Shown piece by piece: positions 4,287-40,900 of a stretch of DNA of 40,900 bases. The translations under genes were made by a program, and so were the position numbers. Under the pieces are notes generated by a model. That model had not been told where the DNA came from. It searched no databases and was given only the letters and a program-made list of their open reading frames with translations. The DNA lies in the sequence record NC_003214.2; one strand, given 5' to 3'. Each line of letters opens with the position of its first letter. Position 1 is the stretch's first letter.

Positions 4287-4506
4287 TTTCACCACCCGTA
4301 AATTCCTGTTGTGTCATTTTTCTTATTACTGATATTTTTGATATCTTAATGTAGATTGGGTTTCCGTTAGGGTCTGTTCCTATTATATTATTGTAGTCGT
4401 CAATTTCTTGTATCTGAAGTCGATATTTTCTTCCTTGTGCTAGGACTTCTATGTAGTCTCCTACTGAGAATGAGAACTTTCCCATTCTTAACTCATGTTT
4501 TGTCAT
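4267..4506 (-). CDS. 79-aa small beta-barrel protein, possibly Sm/Lsm/Hfq-like
   Basis: Leaderless ATG 24 nt below TATA (4531-4537); pattern VLAQGRKYRLQIQEIDDYNNII...YIKISKISVI. Fold call is inference. Confidence 0.8.
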   Translation of the reverse strand: MTKHELRMGKFSFSVGDYIEVLAQGRKYRLQIQEIDDYNNIIGTDPNGNPIYIKISKISVIRKMTQQEFTGGENVDTTK

Positions 4507-4507
4507 T

Positions 4508-4545
4508 ACTTTGTACTATCACAAAGTTGGATTTAAATTTTTTTA
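4508..4545 (-). promoter_or_regulatory. TATA/BRE plus inverted-repeat operator (ACTTTGT-actatc-ACAAAGT) of the helicase/nuclease operon
   Basis: 7-bp arms at 4508-4514 and 4521-4527, lying between TATA (4531-4537) and ATG 4506. Confidence 0.7.
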
Positions 4546-4568
4546 GTACCTTTCTTCCTATTTAGTTT

Positions 4569-4784: not shown

Positions 4785-5138
4785 TTATTCAAGTAATATT
4801 TTCTTTTTTCTGCTTGTTTCTGTATTTGTTTCGAATTTCTCTACATATTTGAATAATTTCTCATATTTTTCTACTATTTTCAGCATTGCTTTGATGTCTT
4901 CTAACGCATTCGCAGGGAACGACACGCTGTTGGTTGGCTTTTGTCCATGTATTGAAATTAATACGTTAACGTTGTTCTTATCGTCTTTGTATGCTATAAA
5001 ACCTAGTGATAGTTGTTCGCCCTCGTACACGTCAAATCTGCTAAATCTTTTTTGTGATTTCGTGAATTCTTCTACCCATTTATCAATTTCGGTTTTTAGC
5101 TCATCTGTTCTGTCTTGTTTCACTTCTTGTTTTGTCAT
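4785..5138 (-). CDS. Probable ssDNA-binding protein, rudivirus gp17/ORF131-like (117 aa)
   Basis: VLISIHGQ...ALEDIKAMLKIVEKYEKLFKYVEKF resembles my recollection of the SIRV2 gp17 core (SMTIHSQ...AEDLKLIAEFLEKYSDFLNEYVKF); context next to helicase and Cas4. Confidence 0.6.
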   Translation of the reverse strand: MTKQEVKQDRTDELKTEIDKWVEEFTKSQKRFSRFDVYEGEQLSLGFIAYKDDKNNVNVLISIHGQKPTNSVSFPANALEDIKAMLKIVEKYEKLFKYVEKFETNTETSRKKKILLE

Positions 5139-5144
5139 TTATTT

Positions 5145-5711
5145 TTACCCCTTTTTCGTCTTTGACAGTGCTTCATATTGCGTCTTTAATTCTTCAAGTC
5201 GTGAAGGGTGTACTAGTGTTACCATTGGCTGGGGATAGTCTGATTGTTGTAGTGCTATACCTACTATCACTGCTCCATTCTTTAATTTCGGTACAACAGA
5301 CCTTAGCAAACTATAATAAACTCCTTGAGATGTTGAGAACAAGTACACCTCTTTTTTATGGTTATTTACCTCCTTTAGTAGATTAATTGGAATTGTTTGA
5401 TTGTTTACAATTTCTTTTATTAGTCTTTGTTCTAATTCGTTGTTATCTATTACATATCCGTCGATATAGCTTACTTGTGCTGGTTCATTACTGTTCTTTA
5501 GTATTACATCTCTTATTTCTACTTTCTTGATTATCAGCAGACGCCACAAATAGTTCTTTAGATTTTCCCTTTGAAATGGTAGTACAAACTCGTCGGATTT
5601 GGCTTCTTCAACCATCTCTATTTTTTGTGTTTCTGTGTTTGCTATTTCAACATTTTCTTCAGGTTCTTCTTGTTTTAACTCCTCTTTTATTTTATCTTTT
5701 GAACTTACCAT
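5145..5711 (-). CDS. Hypothetical protein (188 aa), acidic N-terminus, beta-rich core
   Basis: GGAGG SD; operon packing. Confidence 0.88.
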   Translation of the reverse strand: MVSSKDKIKEELKQEEPEENVEIANTETQKIEMVEEAKSDEFVLPFQRENLKNYLWRLLIIKKVEIRDVILKNSNEPAQVSYIDGYVIDNNELEQRLIKEIVNNQTIPINLLKEVNNHKKEVYLFSTSQGVYYSLLRSVVPKLKNGAVIVGIALQQSDYPQPMVTLVHPSRLEELKTQYEALSKTKKG

Positions 5712-5854: not shown

Positions 5855-5884
5855 TTTTGTTCTATCATAAATTGTAGCACAATT

Positions 5885-5900
5885 GATATTTAAATTTTTC
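5885..5900 (-). promoter_or_regulatory. Early-type promoter (BRE-TATA) GAAAAATTTAAATATC
   Basis: Motif repeated upstream of nearly every gene in 5.9-9.5 kb. Confidence 0.85.
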
Positions 5901-5980
5901 TGTATGCGTTAGTTGTCTTCAGTAATGAGTTTCATGAGAAGAAAATTAAAAAAAAATACTGATAAAAAAAGGAAAGTAAA

Positions 5981-6133
5981 TTATTTTTCTCTTCTCTGTA
6001 GATATTCTTCTAGTGCTTCACGTATTACATCTTGTATTTTTTTATCATTTTGTGCACAATAAATTTTTAGTCTTGTTTTTAAGCTTTTCGGGATTGTAAT
6101 TCCAAATGATACTTTTTCTTCTTGTTCTGTCAT
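5981..6133 (-). CDS. Ribbon-helix-helix (CopG-like) regulator, 50 aa, not in the ORF track
   Basis: MTEQEEKVSFGITIPKSLKTRLKIYCAQNDKKIQDVIREALEEYLQRREK; AGGTGA SD; own promoter at 6165-6182. Confidence 0.9.
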   Translation of the reverse strand: MTEQEEKVSFGITIPKSLKTRLKIYCAQNDKKIQDVIREALEEYLQRREK

Positions 6134-6164
6134 TTTTTCACCTAAATATAATTTAGAATTAGCG

Positions 6165-6182
6165 GATATTTAAAACTTTTTC
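6165..6182 (-). promoter_or_regulatory. Early-type promoter GAAAAAGTTTTAAATATC
   Basis: Repeated motif ~32 nt upstream of ATG 6133. Confidence 0.8.
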
Positions 6183-6222
6183 TGAAAAGAAGTTTAGAAG
6201 AAAGGAGGATAAAAAAAGAGAT

Positions 6223-6561
6223 TCACTTTTTCTTTTCTCTCCATCCTTGAACTTCATAAATATATATTTTGTTGTCTTCTTTCCTATAAGTGAACTCTAG
6301 TTTGTACATGATATCATCGTCTTCATCGTATGTATATTGGTCTATTGTTATTCCATTACTAGATACACTGTTACTTGAATCATAGTTTCCGAGCAATTCC
6401 CTATATTCTTCTTCTGTCACCTTAAGTGGATCTTTGAATTTTATTTTGAACTCACTTACTTTTTCCATAAATAAGAAATCCAAGGCATCATCTAGATCAT
6501 CTGCTTCTGTCCAATCGTTTATTATATCTGATTCAATTTTTTCTAAATCTTGTTTTTCCAT
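6223..6561 (-). CDS. acrID1: DUF1374 / AcrID1-family anti-CRISPR protein (112 aa; SIFV ORF14-like)
   Basis: Very acidic; SEFKIKFKDPLKVTEEEYRELL and YKLEFTYRKEDNKIYIYEVQGWREK match the recalled AcrID1 pattern. Activity of this particular homolog is not shown. Confidence 0.75.
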   Translation of the reverse strand: MEKQDLEKIESDIINDWTEADDLDDALDFLFMEKVSEFKIKFKDPLKVTEEEYRELLGNYDSSNSVSSNGITIDQYTYDEDDDIMYKLEFTYRKEDNKIYIYEVQGWREKKK

Positions 6562-6594
6562 TTTAATTTCCCTAACATAATGTTCTTCTACTCT

Positions 6595-6612
6595 ATTATT
6601 TAAATCTTTTTC
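6595..6612 (-). promoter_or_regulatory. Early-type promoter GAAAAAGATTTAAATAAT
   Basis: Repeated motif upstream of 6561. Confidence 0.8.
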
Positions 6613-6652
6613 TTGATTTCTAGATTCTTAGATATAAGAGCAGAAGTTCATC

Positions 6653-6666
6653 GGAAAATTTAAATA
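6653..6666 (+). promoter_or_regulatory. Early-type promoter GGAAAATTTAAATA
   Basis: Repeated motif upstream of 6697. Confidence 0.8.
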
Positions 6667-6696
6667 TATGTTTTACGTATGTAGTAATGATCAAAA

Positions 6697-6996
6697 ATGG
6701 TTGATGTGGAAACAGTCGAGACAAAATATAAGATCATTTTGGATACACAAAGTAATTATGTATTAATGGAAGGGAGGCTGAAGGTAGAGGTGCGGATTAA
6801 AGGAAAACCTATAATATATGAGGTTCAGGAAGTGAGAAATATGGGGTATCTAATCGATATCACTGAACTTGATATTGCAGATACAAAACAACGTATTGAT
6901 AGTAAACTTTGTGAGAGACGTTATAAATATGTTAATAGCTTAAAAAATTTAGAAAAATTTATTAATTTTGTAGGAGCAGAAATAGAAGTTAAGTAA
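6697..6996 (+). CDS. MV(E/D)V...IEV family paralog 1 (99 aa)
   Basis: Aligns with 8273-8584 and 9149-9436; own promoter and T-tract terminator. Confidence 0.9.
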   Translation: MVDVETVETKYKIILDTQSNYVLMEGRLKVEVRIKGKPIIYEVQEVRNMGYLIDITELDIADTKQRIDSKLCERRYKYVNSLKNLEKFINFVGAEIEVK

Positions 6997-7120
6997 TTCA
7001 ATTTATTTTTTTTATGTTTTTCTATTTCTTATTTTTCTCATTTTCGTTATGATGTTTCTTTCTTTAAAATAGTTTCGTTGACTTTTTTAATATCGAGAAA
7101 TCGAGACAAAGAAGTATATC

Positions 7121-7134
7121 GAAAAATTTAAATA
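7121..7134 (+). promoter_or_regulatory. Early-type promoter GAAAAATTTAAATA
   Basis: Repeated motif; ATG 7158 lies 24 nt after the TATA. Confidence 0.85.
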
Positions 7135-7157
7135 CCCGTTTTATGTATATATTCTTG

Positions 7158-7895
7158 ATGTATGGGTTAGAAGTTAAACAACTCAAATTACTTTATAATT
7201 TACCTAAAGTTTTTTTAACACCAAATCTAAATAAATTTTCTATCACAAGAAATTATGTGGATTGTGCCTATTATGAGTCAAGAAGTGGGCTAACTAGAGA
7301 GGGCTGTATTATATTCGATGGTAATGTTCACAGAACACGTGGAATATATTATATTCCTGTACCGTCTGCTGTGGAACTATCATATAGAAGGAAAATGATA
7401 AAGGATGAACAAGATGTCAAGCAGATAATAGAGAAAATTAATCTTTATGGTGCTACTCTAAATACTAATAAGTTGTTAGTAAAGTGGAATAATTATGAAA
7501 TAATTCTATATGATCGGTTCATTAAAGGAGGAATGTATGAGTTTCCTTTACTGTTTAGTCAAGGACATCTATATGTTTACAACATCCCTAGGGTGAGGGA
7601 GGCATATAGGATTATCTATGAAAACGATAACCAAAAGGAGGAAATTGATAGTGAGATGTTTGAAGAGATTAACGAATTTAGCGTATACAATCATGCTATC
7701 AAGTTTGATAAGAAAGTGCTGAAATTAAAAGAATTGTATGTTTCACCTGGTCAAGGAGTAGTCATATACACACTAGATGACGTTACACTTGTTTCAGAGT
7801 CACCAGACCATAATAAAATTGAGAAATTTGTGTATAAGAATTCGTGGATACTGTTTTCACATCGTGCCCCACGTAACCAAGATCAAAGAGATTAA
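7158..7895 (+). CDS. Hypothetical protein (245 aa; leaderless start 7158 preferred over 7143), C-terminal SPDH...LFSH motif
   Basis: Long ORF; ATG 7143 is too close to the TATA. Confidence 0.9.
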   Translation: MYGLEVKQLKLLYNLPKVFLTPNLNKFSITRNYVDCAYYESRSGLTREGCIIFDGNVHRTRGIYYIPVPSAVELSYRRKMIKDEQDVKQIIEKINLYGATLNTNKLLVKWNNYEIILYDRFIKGGMYEFPLLFSQGHLYVYNIPRVREAYRIIYENDNQKEEIDSEMFEEINEFSVYNHAIKFDKKVLKLKELYVSPGQGVVIYTLDDVTLVSESPDHNKIEKFVYKNSWILFSHRAPRNQDQRD

Positions 7896-7946
7896 CATTT
7901 TTTTATGATTCTTCTTAATCGAGAAAAATGTTTCTAGAGATTTGTC

Positions 7947-7960
7947 GAAAAATTTAAATA
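7947..7960 (+). promoter_or_regulatory. Early-type promoter GAAAAATTTAAATA
   Basis: Identical to 7121-7134; ATG 7981 lies 21 nt downstream. Confidence 0.85.
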
Positions 7961-7980
7961 TTTATTTTGCGTATTTTTAA

Positions 7981-8211
7981 ATGATAAACATGGGTGGGAA
8001 AACATTAATTATAAATTGGGAAAACCCGTTAAATAGAGATGCATACACGGAAATAGGAAAATTGATGGTGTTAGTTTTGCCGTATGTAGTTAATATTGAG
8101 ATTGTAGATACTGAAGGTTGTATAATGGAAATAGATGATACAATAGAAGATGAGATAAAGGAGTTAAGTAGATTCTTAAAGTATGTTGAAGTGTCTTTTG
8201 CAGAAGAATAA
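7981..8211 (+). CDS. Small acidic hypothetical protein (76 aa), anti-defence candidate
   Basis: Own early promoter; acidic. Confidence 0.85.
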   Translation: MINMGGKTLIINWENPLNRDAYTEIGKLMVLVLPYVVNIEIVDTEGCIMEIDDTIEDEIKELSRFLKYVEVSFAEE

Positions 8212-8272
8212 AAAATAAGCTATCCAATTTTTTTATAATATAAAAAGAGAAAAATAAAAAAAATAAATTAAC

Positions 8273-8584
8273 TTAGTTAACTTCTATTTCGGCACCTATC
8301 ATTTCCGCTATTTTTTCGAGTGTCTTTAACACATTCACGTATCTCTCAAATCTTTTATTTAGAGTTTCGTCAATATCTCCTTTAACATCTGTCACTTCAT
8401 TCTGTATCTCATTCTCTGTAATAGTTTGCATATTTCCCATAAATTTTTCTTGTTTGTCCCTGTATTTTATTTCACTCTCCTTAACAGTTATTATAGCTTC
8501 TATCGTTCCTTCAAGCGTTATACTATCGTCCCTTGTGTCGATAATCAATTTGTATTTTATTGTTTTTTGTTTCACTTCTACCAT
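8273..8584 (-). CDS. MV(E/D)V...IEV family paralog 2 (103 aa)
   Basis: KYKLIIDT...LEG...RYVNVLKTLEKI...GAEIEV shared with 6697-6996. Confidence 0.9.
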   Translation of the reverse strand: MVEVKQKTIKYKLIIDTRDDSITLEGTIEAIITVKESEIKYRDKQEKFMGNMQTITENEIQNEVTDVKGDIDETLNKRFERYVNVLKTLEKIAEMIGAEIEVN

Positions 8585-8612
8585 GTTTGGTCGATTGTAT
8601 ATTAGATAAAGA

Positions 8613-8628
8613 GATATTTAAAATTTTC
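8613..8628 (-). promoter_or_regulatory. Early-type promoter GAAAATTTTAAATATC
   Basis: Repeated motif upstream of 8584. Confidence 0.85.
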
Positions 8629-8727
8629 TGTGTCTTTCTCCTTATCGATTTTTCGTCCTAAAAATTCCATACGATAAAAATATTATCAGAAACATGAGAA
8701 CAATTAGAAATAAAAAAAAGGAGAAAA

Positions 8728-9012
8728 TTATTTTTCATAATTAGAATATATAAGATTTATAAGGGGTGATATCTCTTTTTCATGTTTTTTTAGTATGTCT
8801 AGGACATACCATTGATCATTATAGTCTTCAGGTTTTGCTATTATAAACAATTTTACTAATTTTTCCATAAATTGAATCCCTTTTATATGTCCAAATCTTT
8901 CATACCACCACTGTATGAATTCAACATTTTCTGTAGACATATAAAAAAATTTATCATTAATTTTAACATATTTTTCCCCAAATTCTATCTGTTCATTTAT
9001 CTGTTCATTCAT
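8728..9012 (-). CDS. Hypothetical protein (94 aa), anti-defence candidate
   Basis: Own promoter; GGGGA SD. Confidence 0.85.
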   Translation of the reverse strand: MNEQINEQIEFGEKYVKINDKFFYMSTENVEFIQWWYERFGHIKGIQFMEKLVKLFIIAKPEDYNDQWYVLDILKKHEKEISPLINLIYSNYEK

Positions 9013-9044
9013 ACTTCTATCCCCTAATTATCATTAGAAAAATA

Positions 9045-9060
9045 GATATTTAAAGATTTC
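9045..9060 (-). promoter_or_regulatory. Early-type promoter GAAATCTTTAAATATC
   Basis: 24-bp identity 9042-9065 = 9462-9485. Confidence 0.85.
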
Positions 9061-9148
9061 TCTATTTTTTGATTCATGAAAAAATGGATAACTTTCCAGA
9101 TAATATCCAAAACTTGAAAAAAATTACGAATAAAAAAAAGAAATTGGC

Positions 9149-9436
9149 TTAATCAACTTCTATTGTTAATCCTGATTTTTCTAATTCATTCAGACCTTCT
9201 TTTATTTCGTCAATTCTTTTGTCTAGTTCTTCAACAATTCTATTTATCATGTTTTTTACCTGGTCTGTTTTTATTGTTTCCACGAATCCTATTTCTTTTA
9301 TTGATGAAACAGCGTATGGCATTTCACTGTCTTTTACGTTAAAGATTACTTTTGTTTCACAGTCAAGACTTACAATACCATTTACGGAATTTATTTTTAT
9401 CTTGCATTCGATTTGTTTCTTTACTACTTCAACCAT
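9149..9436 (-). CDS. MV(E/D)V...IEV family paralog 3 (95 aa)
   Basis: Same N-terminus, beta-strand pattern, C-terminal helix and terminal IEV as the other two. Confidence 0.88.
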   Translation of the reverse strand: MVEVVKKQIECKIKINSVNGIVSLDCETKVIFNVKDSEMPYAVSSIKEIGFVETIKTDQVKNMINRIVEELDKRIDEIKEGLNELEKSGLTIEVD

Positions 9437-9464
9437 TTTTGGTCATTAATACATTAGACACATA

Positions 9465-9480
9465 GATATTTAAAGATTTC
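9465..9480 (-). promoter_or_regulatory. Early-type promoter GAAATCTTTAAATATC
   Basis: Duplicate of 9045-9060. Confidence 0.85.
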
Positions 9481-11977: not shown

Positions 11978-12006
11978 TTTTTGTCACTATACTATTAGCA
12001 TGTAAG

Positions 12007-12028
12007 CTTATAAATTTGTGATATCATA
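12007..12028. promoter_or_regulatory. Divergent TATA plus TGTGATATCATA operator
   Basis: The 22-bp sequence is the exact reverse complement of 21620-21641. Confidence 0.75.
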
Positions 12029-12045
12029 ATTTATGTAGAGTAAAC

Positions 12046-13432: not shown

Positions 13433-13714
13433 CTATTTGAATAAGCTTATAATTATCTCATATTTTGTTTTCCCTAATCGTTGTGCTAATTCTTCTAATC
13501 TTTCGTTTTCCTGATCATAAAAAATTATGTTGATAACCTTGGGTATTAAATCATTTTTTATGTTCATGTCATGTGATCTTGTAGAGTTATATATCTTTAC
13601 TTGATATTTTTTCTCTAATTCTTTCATTACACATTCCCTATACGATTTATATTCTTTACACATATTAACTAGTTTATAGAAGTATTTTTTTGATATGCGT
13701 ATTGTGTAGATCAT
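13433..13714 (-). CDS. Tandem RHH-type transcription regulator (93 aa)
   Basis: Two strand-helix-helix units: IYTIRISKKYFYKL... and INIIFYDQENERLEELAQRLGKTKYEIIISL. Confidence 0.7.
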   Translation of the reverse strand: MIYTIRISKKYFYKLVNMCKEYKSYRECVMKELEKKYQVKIYNSTRSHDMNIKNDLIPKVINIIFYDQENERLEELAQRLGKTKYEIIISLFK

Positions 13715-14164: not shown

Positions 14165-14431
14165 ATGGAGGAATTTATCATTAAAATAGCTGGAACTAAG
14201 GGGATATCAAATTTTAAATCATACCATTTTAGTATCATCTCGAATTATGAAAATTTTTTTAATTTTATATTGCCTAAAGACGTTAAAGATGTCCTCGTAG
14301 TCCTACCTTTTGACGAGGAAAAAACTAAAACAATTAAGCACGCGATAACTAATGCCAGAAGTAACGTATCGGTTACTATAATGTATAGTGGAAAGATAAG
14401 GGACGAAATGATAATTGGCTGGAGAACTTAA
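14165..14431 (+). CDS. Hypothetical protein (88 aa), co-transcribed with acrIII-1
   Basis: 9 nt after the acrIII-1 stop; GTGGG SD. Confidence 0.85.
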   Translation: MEEFIIKIAGTKGISNFKSYHFSIISNYENFFNFILPKDVKDVLVVLPFDEEKTKTIKHAITNARSNVSVTIMYSGKIRDEMIIGWRT

Positions 14432-14733
14432 GCTGTAAGTAAAATTTCATTTTTTAATAGTTGGTTTACACTCATTCCTCTTCTCTTCAGCTCGTTTTTA
14501 ATTATTAACTCATTCTCTTTCTTCATGTGAACCTGTAACCTGACGTATTCCTTTTCTCCTACTCTTATTATGACATTTTTCACGTTCTCTTTCCTATACG
14601 ATTTCGTGTCATCTTCAATATTGAAGTAGTTTAACAATAGTTGGCGTAAAACGGCGGATACACTTGTTTCTCTTCTTTCTGCTTCTTCTCTCAACCTATC
14701 ATACAACGACTTTTCAATCGTTACTATCATCAC
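14428..14733 (-). CDS. avtR: AvtR-like duplicated RHH regulator (~100 aa; GTG 14733 or ATG 14730)
   Basis: TSVSAVLRQLLLNYFNIED and ENELIIKNELKRRGMSVNQLLK match my recollection of AFV6 AvtR; divergent gene arrangement. Confidence 0.82.
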   Translation of the reverse strand: MMIVTIEKSLYDRLREEAERRETSVSAVLRQLLLNYFNIEDDTKSYRKENVKNVIIRVGEKEYVRLQVHMKKENELIIKNELKRRGMSVNQLLKNEILLTA

Positions 14734-14757
14734 ATGTCACTAATAAAATTATTACAT

Positions 14758-14818
14758 CACAAATTTAAAAACTTTGTACTACCCACAAGTTTAAAAATGT
14801 GATATCACAATTATAAAT
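14758..14818. promoter_or_regulatory. Divergent promoter: three CACAA-TATA direct repeats and the perfect palindrome TGTGATATCACA (14798-14809)
   Basis: cacaaatttaaaaa 14758, cacaagtttaaaaa 14784, cacaattataaa 14806. Confidence 0.78.
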
Positions 14819-15109
14819 ATGCAACTTAAAGCCACAAGTTTTAGGGCGAATGAAAAAATAATATTCGTGTTAAATTCTAATAAACTTTTTTGTGAGACTT
14901 ACGACGAATTTTTAAATAGATTAATTGATGAATGTGAAGGAGCAATAAATTACGCTAATAACGACATAACTGAAACCTTATCGATTTATTCTTTCAAACT
15001 ATCTTCAGAAACGATTGGGAAACTTAGCACAATAGCAAAAAAATATAGAATTTCTAGAAGTGAAGCTTTCCGAAAATTGATAATAGCAAAGGCTGAGGGG
15101 CTGTGTTAA
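14819..15109 (+). CDS. Probable tandem RHH regulator (96 aa)
   Basis: SIYSFKLSSETIGKLSTIAKKYRISRSEAFRKLI is a classic RHH; the N-terminal half is a weaker copy. Confidence 0.78.
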   Translation: MQLKATSFRANEKIIFVLNSNKLFCETYDEFLNRLIDECEGAINYANNDITETLSIYSFKLSSETIGKLSTIAKKYRISRSEAFRKLIIAKAEGLC

Positions 15110-15490: not shown

Positions 15491-15900
15491 ACGCTAAACA
15501 GATATTGAAGCTTGATATTGATGTTGACGTGAACTTCTATGATCCTAATTGGCTTCTCCAGAAGAAATTAGATATGTTACACGCACTAGGATATCAAGAA
15601 GAAGAAGCATGGTGGGAATATTCGCCGTCAGGAAAACATATTCATGTAATCATCGTCCTAAAGGATCCCATTTCTACTAAGGAGTTGTTTGATCTTCAGT
15701 TCCTATTAGGAGACGACCACAAACGCGTTTATTTCAACTATCTGAGATATTCAGTAATGAAGGAAGACGCGGTACACTTTAATGTACTTTATACGTATAA
15801 GAAGTCTTTAACTTTCTCTGATAAACTCAAGGCTATTTTTCGACATTGGTTTAAGTCAAAGCAGTACTCAAAAAACCTAAGACTAGGACAAACAACGTGA
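15484..15900 (+). CDS. Minimal AEP (primase-polymerase)-like catalytic domain (138 aa; frame open back to GTG 15103)
   Basis: ILKLDID (motif I), YSPSGKHIHV (motif II), LGDD (motif III candidate). Confidence 0.65.
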   Translation: MVDAKQILKLDIDVDVNFYDPNWLLQKKLDMLHALGYQEEEAWWEYSPSGKHIHVIIVLKDPISTKELFDLQFLLGDDHKRVYFNYLRYSVMKEDAVHFNVLYTYKKSLTFSDKLKAIFRHWFKSKQYSKNLRLGQTT

Positions 15901-21547: not shown

Positions 21548-21619
21548 ATTTCCCCCTAAATCATATGTAAAAACAAACCTTTAAAATATAAGGATTCATG
21601 TTTACCACACCTCTGGAAA

Positions 21620-21641
21620 TATGATATCACAAATTTATAAG
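21620..21641 (+). promoter_or_regulatory. TATGATATCACA operator plus TATA
   Basis: 22-bp identity with the reverse complement of 12007-12028. Confidence 0.75.
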
Positions 21642-21682
21642 TTTGGATACCAAAAGAATAGTGGCAAAGGTGGTGATAATAA

Positions 21683-38597: not shown

Positions 38598-38795
38598 TTA
38601 CTCACCTAATATAACAATTTTATCGGTAACTTTTAAAACATAACGTCCATCCCTCTCTTCAACAGAAACAGAGTAACCAAGGGACTTAAAATCCTCCATT
38701 AATGTCTCAAGATATGCCTTAGAAAAAACTTTTGAGGGAAGGATTAAAACCTTAAATTGTCTACCGTTTTCTTTCAGAAAAGTAAGTCCATGCAT
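38598..38795 (-). CDS. Small protein with a TusA/SirA-like pattern (65 aa; ATG 38795, GTG 38819 alternative)
   Basis: FKSLGYSVSVEERDGRYVLKVT. Confidence 0.7.
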   Translation of the reverse strand: MHGLTFLKENGRQFKVLILPSKVFSKAYLETLMEDFKSLGYSVSVEERDGRYVLKVTDKIVILGE

Positions 38796-38875
38796 GATAT
38801 AAAAAAAAGGATATACCACTTAAAAAGTTATCGGAAATAAACGCTTATTAGAGAGAAAAAGAAGAAAATAAAATA

Positions 38876-39658: not shown

Positions 39659-39685
39659 GATAAAAATAAGAGAAGAAAAGGGTAT

Positions 39686-40222
39686 TTAAATCTTTTTCGC
39701 GTATTTCACAAATCGAGTTATATATCGTCTAGGATACGCACAATCAAACTTCTTAAACTCGTTAAACATGGAAGTTACAACACGAAAATGTAGGACATCA
39801 TGAACAAAAAAATCAAGATAAGGATATGAAACAAGCTTAACTAAATTACTTTCTATAAGATACTTAGAACACTCTTTGACATGGATTTTGGATGCTTTTA
39901 TCGATGAAAGCGTAGGATAGACATATTGTTTAAAAAGATCAGAGTAAAGATTATAAAATATTTCAGCATGCTTAAAACATTTATTACCAGCACAAGAAAT
40001 ATCATAAGTTAGCAAATATTTATTAGAAAGTGGTTCTGGTACGTTATATTCGATGTAAATTAAACCGTTATTATAATCAATTTCGAAACTTGACTTACGC
40101 AATGTAATAAATAGATATAAGCCAAAAGAAGGACATAAAAATTTGAATCTATCAGGACTGAAATGAATATCAAAAATAGAAGAATGTATACCATGACGTA
40201 ATAAAGAAAGCAAACTGGGCAT
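39686..40222 (-). CDS. Hypothetical protein (178 aa)
   Basis: Long ORF; start uncertain. Confidence 0.75.
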   Translation of the reverse strand: MPSLLSLLRHGIHSSIFDIHFSPDRFKFLCPSFGLYLFITLRKSSFEIDYNNGLIYIEYNVPEPLSNKYLLTYDISCAGNKCFKHAEIFYNLYSDLFKQYVYPTLSSIKASKIHVKECSKYLIESNLVKLVSYPYLDFFVHDVLHFRVVTSMFNEFKKFDCAYPRRYITRFVKYAKKI

Positions 40223-40263: not shown

Positions 40264-40297
40264 AAAAATGTGATAGAATTTATTCTATCACATTTTT
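40264..40297. promoter_or_regulatory. Perfect 16-bp inverted repeat AAAAATGTGATAGAAT-tt-ATTCTATCACATTTTT
   Basis: All 16 pairs checked; directly upstream of the last minus-strand ORFs. Confidence 0.9.
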
Positions 40298-40356: not shown

Positions 40357-40900
40357 AGAACGAATGAGTGAAGTAAGTCAAATGTGTAGTGAAGTAAGAA
40401 AAAACGAAAAAGAATGAGTGTAGTATCCAGTGTGGCATAATTAGTAAGGACGAATTAAGGGAGAAATAGTACGAGTTGAGAAAGAGGTGTGAAGAAAGGA
40501 CGAACGGGGAACGAATGAGTGAAGTAAGGGAAAATAAGTAACAAATATGAAGTAAGTGGTACGAGAAAAATTCAAAGAAGAACGAATATAGGGGGGGTTG
40601 AATATATCTATATAATAAAAGAGAGTGAATGAGTGAAGTAAGAAGTAAGAAATGTCCGTATATAGTACGAAATACCCGTATTAAGTACTTAGTACGACGT
40701 ATCCGTGTCTAATACGTTATACGACGTATCCGTGTCTAATACGTTATACGACGTATCCGTGTCTAATACGTTATACGACGTATCCGTGTCTAATACGTTA
40801 TACGACGTATCCGTGTCTAATACGTTATACGACGTATCCGTGTCTAATACGTTATACGACGTATCCGTGTCTAATACGTCTTATAAAATTTCTCTCTCGG
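40357..40900. repeat. Right inverted terminal repeat
   Basis: Reverse complement of 1-544, with one extra terminal G at 40900. Confidence 0.97.
40693..40879 (-). repeat. Seven tandem 27-bp terminal repeats (mirror of 21-207)
   Basis: Same unit and copy number as the left end. Confidence 0.98.

Follow-up and report, generated by a model that had tools for sequence, protein, structure and literature searches.

The closest described system is that of AvtR from the virus AFV6. This regulator represses its own gene and either activates or represses gp30 depending on its concentration, with activation at low concentration (PMC5569661). Its cooperative footprint between the two promoters covers about 100 nt (PMC5569661), and its SELEX consensus is quoted in a review as ATnnTnnTAnnACnTT (PMC5569661). 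A scheme of promoter occlusion by ribbon-helix-helix (RHH) regulators is drawn in the same review (PMC5569661). Two further systems concern genes treated here. The gp29 protein of SIFV is a member of a clade of cell-cycle regulators named after aCcr1, for which the box AGTATTA has been demonstrated, and leaky expression of gp29 already harms the host (PMC9976892). The early core found before gp12 to gp20 and gp74 is the one described in 2024 for anti-defence genes of archaeal viruses (PMC11065993).

The window analyzed here, a stretch of 40,900 bases, is the complete genome of the betalipothrixvirus SIFV (100% identity to AF440571.2 / NC_003214.2; gene numbers, gp, are those of NC_003214.2), of which 10.7% is non-coding. 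Beside the TATA of five promoter regions, we observed a near-palindrome of 12-16 bp, roughly AWTGTGNTANYAYAWT, hereafter the SIFV box. We predict that these boxes are operators of the tandem RHH regulator AvtR, encoded in SIFV by gp28, a reading to which we give a probability of about 0.75. The features concerned are collected in Table 1.

Table 1. Positions of the boxes, neighboring promoter elements and regulator genes in the SIFV genome.
Feature	Coordinates	Strand	Basis and remarks
gp8 promoter box	4510..4525; core 4512-4523; 20-bp quasi-palindrome with 7-bp arms 4508-4527		16.7 bits; core at -17 to -6 from the gp8 ATG (minus strand)
Back-to-back TATA-like elements of gp8 (leftward) and gp9 (rightward)	4531..4546; gp8 TATA 4531-4538		Sequence reading
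Two overlapping boxes of the gp12-gp11 operon	5856..5883 (5856-5871, 5868-5883)	-	Matrix scan; 3' of an early-type TATA; both between gp12 TATA and ATG
gp23 box	12015..12030; core TGTGATATCATA 12017-12028	+	17.5 bits; directly 3' of TATA 12007-12016; core at -29 to -18 from the gp23 start codon
gp28, AvtR orthologue, proposed binder	14428..14733	-	PDB 4HV0, E 4e-21; Pfam RHH_1
Weak half-box TGTGAT with degenerate second half	14750..14761	-	Directly 3' of the avtR TATA (~14762-14771); 7.7 bits
20-bp quasi-palindrome between two TATA boxes	14771..14790	none	Sequence comparison
Strongest box	14796..14811; perfect 12-bp palindrome TGTGATATCACA 14798-14809	+	19.6 / 20.4 bits (two matrices); between gp29 TATA (14790-14797) and ATG (14819), at -21 to -10
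gp29 (ORF96), tandem RHH of the aCcr1 clade; proposed target gene and rival binder	14819..15109	+	Pfam RHH_1, weak
gp43/gp44 box	21618..21633; TATGATATCACA 21620-21631	none	17.9 bits; abuts TATA 21631-21641
Right-end inverted repeat	40264..40297	none	15-nt arms, 2-nt centre; flanked by A5 and T6 runs

Definition and genomic distribution of the box

The box is an AvtR-type element, about 16 bp long and pseudo-symmetric (AWTGTG-N-TA-N-YAYAWT), with the half-site AWTGTGMT and with invariant T, TA and A columns. In 20 unique sites taken from viruses other than SIFV, positions T7, T10, A11 and A14 were invariant and A16 nearly so (consensus AAAATGTGATAGCACAATTT). The box lies 0-7 bp 3' of the TATA and ends 4-18 bp short of the start codon, and the stronger of its two halves may be the TATA-proximal or the TATA-distal one, depending on the site.

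A sequence-only reading of this DNA had already proposed a TGT-N6-ACA operator family. A sequence check recovered every string that it quoted, each in its place, and the sites at 4508, 12017 and 14798 do lie between a TATA-like element and a start codon, the first in front of gp8 on the minus strand, the second in front of gp23 and the third in front of gp29. The generic pattern itself fared less well than the specific box: TGT-N6-ACA occurs 10 times in the whole SIFV genome against 17.2 expected, and being unenriched and too loose it was therefore rejected as a definition of the motif. By contrast, the specific box was enriched. We counted seven matches to TGTGATATCACA with at most two mismatches where 2.97 were expected, the top four all being non-coding, and 18 copies of the half-site TGTGATA where 9.7 were expected (7 of the 18 intergenic). 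That reading had missed the boxes of the gp12 promoter (5856-5883).

To avoid circularity, the weight matrices were trained on other viruses only, the first without SIFV sites and the second without SIFV and SIFV2. The first matrix, built from the sites of AFV6, AFV7 and AFV9 only, ranked the SIFV positions 14796 (19.6 bits), 21618 (17.9 bits) and 12015 (17.5 bits) at the top, compared with a top score of 16.1 bits in 40 shuffled genomes. With the second matrix (the 20 unique sites, from AFV2, AFV6, AFV7, AFV8, AFV9 and three IMG/VR contigs), five intergenic loci of SIFV scored 12 bits or more versus 0.12 expected; when the intergenic segments were shuffled 1000 times with their dinucleotides preserved, no shuffle reached this result. 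The best scores per promoter were 20.4 bits for gp29, 18.0 for gp22/gp23, 17.7 for gp43/gp44, 16.7 for gp8/gp9 and 12.2 for gp12, followed by 9.5 for gp75, 7.7 for gp28 and at most 4.9 for the remaining promoters, so that the distribution is bimodal. With the motif properly defined, the observation is real and statistically strong.

Other ways of finding the box were unproductive. A k-mer enrichment of intergenic versus coding DNA returned mainly TATA and T-runs and missed the box, and full-text literature searches with the box sequence returned nothing relevant. The degenerate published AvtR consensus, used as a genome scanner, gave no enrichment in the six genomes tested; we rejected it as a genome-wide predictor and kept it for position-by-position comparison only.

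The 85-bp spacer between avtR and gp29 is fully occupied. Three box-like elements stand in 14734-14818, in the order half-box (14750-14761), TATA, quasi-palindrome (14771-14790), TATA and box (14798-14809). The central quasi-palindrome and 4508-4527 agree at 16 of their 20 positions, and the spacing of the half-sites is one base larger at 14771. The 11-mer ACTTTGTACTA, which had been noticed at both places, is indeed common to 4508 and 14771, and SIFV holds no other copy of it.

At the gp8 promoter, the box precedes gp8 (ORF79a), which heads a helicase-Cas4-RHH operon. The TATA-like elements shared out between gp8 and gp9 lie 25-32 nt from both start codons, a spacing that would fit leaderless transcripts. 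The 6 bp at the centre of the 4508 palindrome (SIFV 4514-4519) stand in exactly the opposite orientation in SIFV2 (4370-4375), whereas the flanks are identical in the two viruses. This reads, from the alignment of the two genomes, as a single palindrome-mediated micro-inversion, by which an asymmetric site was flipped yet preserved.

The gp12 promoter differs from the others in its core. A near-identical strong early promoter core, of the GAAAAATTTAAATAT type, precedes gp12 to gp20 and gp74 (5885-9480; 39659-39685), and among these SIFV early-core promoters only the gp12 copy carries boxes. In the same area, a minus-strand, ATG-started ORF of 117 aa (4785-5138) fits SIFV2 gp09 and AFV9 ORF117a by size and position. 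The plus-strand SIFV0010 (4849-5238, TTG start) is probably a misannotation and, if the 4785-5138 ORF is real, that ORF would probably make one leftward operon together with gp12-gp11.

The TATA region of gp23 also faces gp22, a helicase gene, on the opposite strand. The 22 bp that 12007-12028 and 21620-21641 had been said to share are exact reverse complements, and the site at 21620 abuts a TATA as described (21631-21641). Around them, 11980-12031 and 21617-21668 form an inverted paralogy of 52 nt with 83% identity. The additional box in the gp43/gp44 region seems to have arisen when the gp22/gp23 control region was duplicated in inverted orientation. Since that control region and part of the gp43/gp44 region are duplicates, the gp22 and gp44 promoters resemble each other.

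Which gene this box serves is ambiguous. It stands 73-84 nt upstream of the gp43 ATG, past a conserved proximal gp43 TATA, and on the BRE side for gp44. The adjoining TATA (21631-21641) resembles the gp22 and gp37 promoters and points toward gp44; it may serve gp44, gp43 having its own conserved proximal TATA. In SIFV2, the box and TATA are kept beside a diverged spacer with a 12-bp indel. We saw no box upstream of the gp43 homologues in the AFVs and UViGs, and in AFV9 the homologue is annotated directly behind a glycosyltransferase gene. As the homologues outside SIFV and SIFV2 are boxless, gp43 was rejected as a conserved target, and the proposed link of the regulon to the pyramid locus falls back to these two viruses.

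A different short sequence, GGATAC/GTATCC, stands close to the TATA-like elements, at a distance of a few bases, in the gp32, gp34/35, gp37 and gp44 promoters (16026, 17333, 18527 and 21645), in the area of the capsid genes, and also occurs once per 27-bp terminal tandem repeat (34-196 / 40699-40861). This sequence may represent a further promoter element, of late type, or else a binding site that these promoters share with the genome ends.

Conservation among lipothrixviruses

A box stands between the TATA and the start codon at the orthologous gp8, gp12, gp23 and gp29 promoters in ten viruses: SIFV, SIFV2, AFV3, AFV6, AFV7, AFV8, AFV9 and three metagenomic relatives. The equivalent genes are ORF79a for gp8, ORF49 for gp12, ORF111-122 for gp23 and ORF96 for gp29. 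Apart from the boxes, the intergenic DNA of AFV3/6/7/8/9 and of the three metagenomic relatives is unalignable. SIFV2, which is 86% identical to SIFV, keeps all the boxes. The box at 14796 is kept in all the relatives, the gp8-promoter box has orthologues in SIFV2, AFV6/7/8/9 and three UViGs, and the ORF49 promoters of AFV3/6/7/8/9 and of the UViGs carry a box immediately after the TATA. The TGTGAT half-box that follows the avtR TATA is also present in the UViGs, AFV9 and AFV2. In one relative, the gp8 promoter holds a perfect 16-bp palindrome, so the site is in principle two-fold symmetric.

In AFV6, boxes were found at the orthologous gp30, gp10 and gp26 promoters, and in the footprinted gp29/gp30 region the top match to the AvtR consensus is the orthologous box at 15721. 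Our ranked list for AFV6 comprises 15721, 5126, 14203, 12556, 6142 and 7209, and a further AFV6 box was seen at the gp13 promoter. AFV2, a member of another genus, encodes an AvtR with 44% identity; its ORF122 promoter carries a box of 16.8 bits, and its avtR promoter a half-box. We did not find a clear ORF96 orthologue in AFV2. Another RHH protein of this virus weakly resembles gp29 in the second of its repeats (E 6e-4), and two other candidates were rejected for lack of similarity, AFV2 gp05 as the equivalent of ORF96 and AFV2 gp08 as that of gp5. Overall, the AvtR box spans Icelandic Sulfolobus viruses, Italian and Kamchatkan Acidianus viruses and a deltalipothrixvirus.

AvtR and the alternative readings

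The sequence-only reading had named one viral regulator, either an AvtR-like protein or ORF96. AvtR is the better fit of the two, on the grounds of its consensus, of the orthology of gp28 and of the conserved boxes. The middle-phase expression and the coordination of replication with the timing of lysis that it had also proposed are hypothetical. The gp28 protein matches AvtR (PDB 4HV0) over its full length (residues 2-100, E 4e-21), and the candidate beta-strand residues are conserved in alignments of the gp28 family. Compared with the AvtR consensus, used here second-hand in its review version (PMC5569661), 14796-14811 has no mismatch at the nine specified positions, as do 1e-4 of the genome 16-mers. 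The number of mismatches is one at 40279, two at 12015, 21618 and 5868, and three at 4510; for the boxes other than 14796 they are confined to the outer A/T positions. The invariant T7, T10, A11 and A14 of the 20 independent sites are specified positions of the AvtR consensus. Actual binding of AvtR in SIFV, as well as the sign and timing of the regulation, is what we infer from these comparisons. One report sits badly with them. The abstract of Peixeiro and colleagues (2013, J Virol 87:124), whose paper reportedly lists eight AFV6 targets, is said to describe the sites bound by AvtR as distant from the TATA of either gene, which conflicts with boxes that abut the TATA, unless the TATA assignments differ.

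The right-end repeat is the part of the set for which another explanation weighs most. It had been placed in the same family, and the half-sites are indeed there: both arms open with the exact half-site AATGTGATA (TGTGATA at 40269-40275, TATCACA at 40286-40292), and one arm (40279) is the near match to the AvtR consensus given above. However, the half-sites are 12 bp wider apart than in any conserved box and the arms score only 9.5-10.9 bits. In addition, the repeat folds as RNA into a hairpin of -15.9 kcal/mol (z -7) whose stem is 15 bp long, and a T-run comes next on either strand, T6 on the plus and T5 on the minus strand, so that a test for hairpin terminators found both a stable stem and a T-run. 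The repeat could then be a hairpin that separates the terminal repeats from gp75/gp74, as an insulator or as a terminator working in both directions, its likeness to the box being coincidental, and we put this at even odds. Its retention in SIFV2 despite the deletion of gp75 favors such a hairpin, whereas no gene end adjoins the repeat on either strand. Taken together, the repeat may serve as a terminator, as a double site for AvtR, or in both roles. The deletion itself (SIFV 39686-40222 versus SIFV2 38747-38870) leaves the first codons of gp75, its upstream region and the right-end repeat in place at about 95% identity. Further out, the genome ends in an inverted terminal repeat of 505 nt (1-505 and 40395-40899, 100% complementary) with seven 27-bp tandem repeats per end.

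For the boxes themselves, it is unlikely that another viral RHH protein is the binder (gp29/ORF96 regulating its own gene, or gp5 or gp13), with AvtR recognizing something else in the same regions. The location of the strongest box, between the TATA and the start of gp29 itself, is a classic place for autorepression; gp29 is a tandem RHH protein that always adjoins avtR, and gp5 is encoded inside the box-controlled helicase operon. Against this, the published AvtR consensus fits the box, and AFV2 keeps both box and AvtR without an orthologue of ORF96 or gp5, having only a weak, generic RHH match. The ORF96 half of the earlier claim suffers from the same AFV2 comparison and from the clade to which gp29 belongs, whose AGTATTA box is missing from the 12-mer box. 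An identity of the two elements was rejected, the aCcr1 box (AGTATTA / TGTATTAT) being absent from every high-scoring SIFV box. Moreover, since gp29 is harmful when leaky, it looks like a target in need of tight control and not a likely binder.

The central element of the avtR/gp29 spacer may be a different case. In SIFV2 (~13655-13674) and AFV9 (~13510-13529), the 14771 element reads TTGTATTAC and contains GTATTA, the seed of the aCcr1 box. Given this seed and the membership of gp29 in the aCcr1 clade, the element may be recognized by gp29 or by the aCcr1 protein of the host.

It is very improbable that the box, instead of being an operator, is an element near the promoter that the host machinery reads, or a host transcription factor exploited by these viruses. 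In favor of this, its position just 3' of the TATA is fixed and TTTGTG follows the gp31 TATA (with a related TTTGTA at gp32). Against it, the box is present at no more than 5-7 of the roughly 40 promoters of SIFV, with bimodal scores, the early anti-defence promoters other than that of gp12 are without it, and its distance to the TATA varies from 0 to 7 bp. Its orientation also differs between SIFV and SIFV2 as well as from relative to relative, unlike that of a core element, and it co-occurs with avtR, AFV2 included. Rudivirus promoters with a virus-specific GTC triplet after the TATA, reportedly described by Kessler and colleagues in 2004, would count in favor of such an element. An archaeal core promoter element was rejected for the few promoters concerned, the variable spacing and the flipped orientation.

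Proposed circuit and comparison with known regulators

On the preferred reading, with AvtR as the binder, accumulated AvtR would occupy the boxes and block the recruitment of polymerase at four promoters, those of the gp8-helicase-Cas4 operon, the gp12-gp11 operon, gp23(-gp24) and gp29-gp30. Since the box lies 0-7 bp past the TATA and close to the start, it would cover the stretch used for RNA polymerase recruitment and DNA opening. AvtR would act on its own promoter through the weak half-box and the central quasi-palindrome, and the packed avtR/gp29 spacer would fit the cooperative footprint of about 100 nt of AFV6 AvtR. As AvtR activates AFV6 gp30 at low concentration, simple repression may be wrong for gp29, where the sign of the regulation could be dual, as reported for AFV6 gp30.

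At gp8/gp9, gp22/gp23 and gp43/gp44, a compact core promoter serves divergent genes and has the box on just one of its flanks, the back-to-back or shared TATA elements having been read directly at gp8/gp9 only. AvtR could in this arrangement be a direction switch, closing the transcript on the side of replication (the helicase operon or gp23) and sparing or favoring gp9 (a virion protein), gp22 and gp44, with the duplication having drawn gp43/gp44 in. We regard this as doubtful. If it were true, the inverted gp22/gp23 duplication would have brought the region of gp43 (the egress pyramid gene) and gp44 into the circuit in the SIFV lineage.

With AvtR operators as the leading interpretation, SIFV, a model for envelopment and pyramid egress, gains a testable map of AvtR targets with five strong control regions and two weak ones, among them the region beside the pyramid gene and the promoter from which gp29, a hijacker of the host cell cycle, would be expressed. 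A transcriptome paper on SIFV was not found in our literature search. The principle was published in 2013, and the gain is therefore one of annotation and experimental design and not a new mechanism.

Compared with known systems, the early anti-defence promoters of archaeal viruses (PMC11065993) share with SIFV gp12 the same strong BRE-TATA core that precedes gp13-gp20 and gp74. In contrast, that core is common to the early genes and the SIFV box is a separate element. The aCcr1 box (AGTATTA / TGTATTAT; PMC9976892) resembles the 14771 element of SIFV2 and AFV9, with its GTATTA just upstream of the gp29 TATA. It differs from the SIFV 14771 element, which has GTACTA, and from the main 12-mer box, which is seedless; for gp29 as a member of the clade, no binding to viral DNA is reported. 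SvtR of the rudivirus SIRV1, CopG, Arc and MetJ are, like AvtR, small RHH proteins that use imperfect inverted repeats near promoters, spread cooperatively and repress by promoter occlusion (PMC5569661), but AvtR has both RHH repeats in one chain and SvtR has the consensus ATnnTTCAAnAnnnnnAAAATG.

The AFV6 AvtR regulon is the closest of all. It has in common with SIFV an orthologous regulator, the divergent avtR/ORF96 pair, a box at orthologous promoters, the match to the consensus and an intergenic region that holds several sites, as cooperative spreading would require. SIFV and SIFV2 differ from it by the extra gp43/gp44 box and by a right-end repeat with other spacing, and the SIFV sites are predicted from sequence. 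The best reading is that the SIFV boxes are the SIFV instance of the regulon published for AFV6 in 2013, plus lineage-specific additions.
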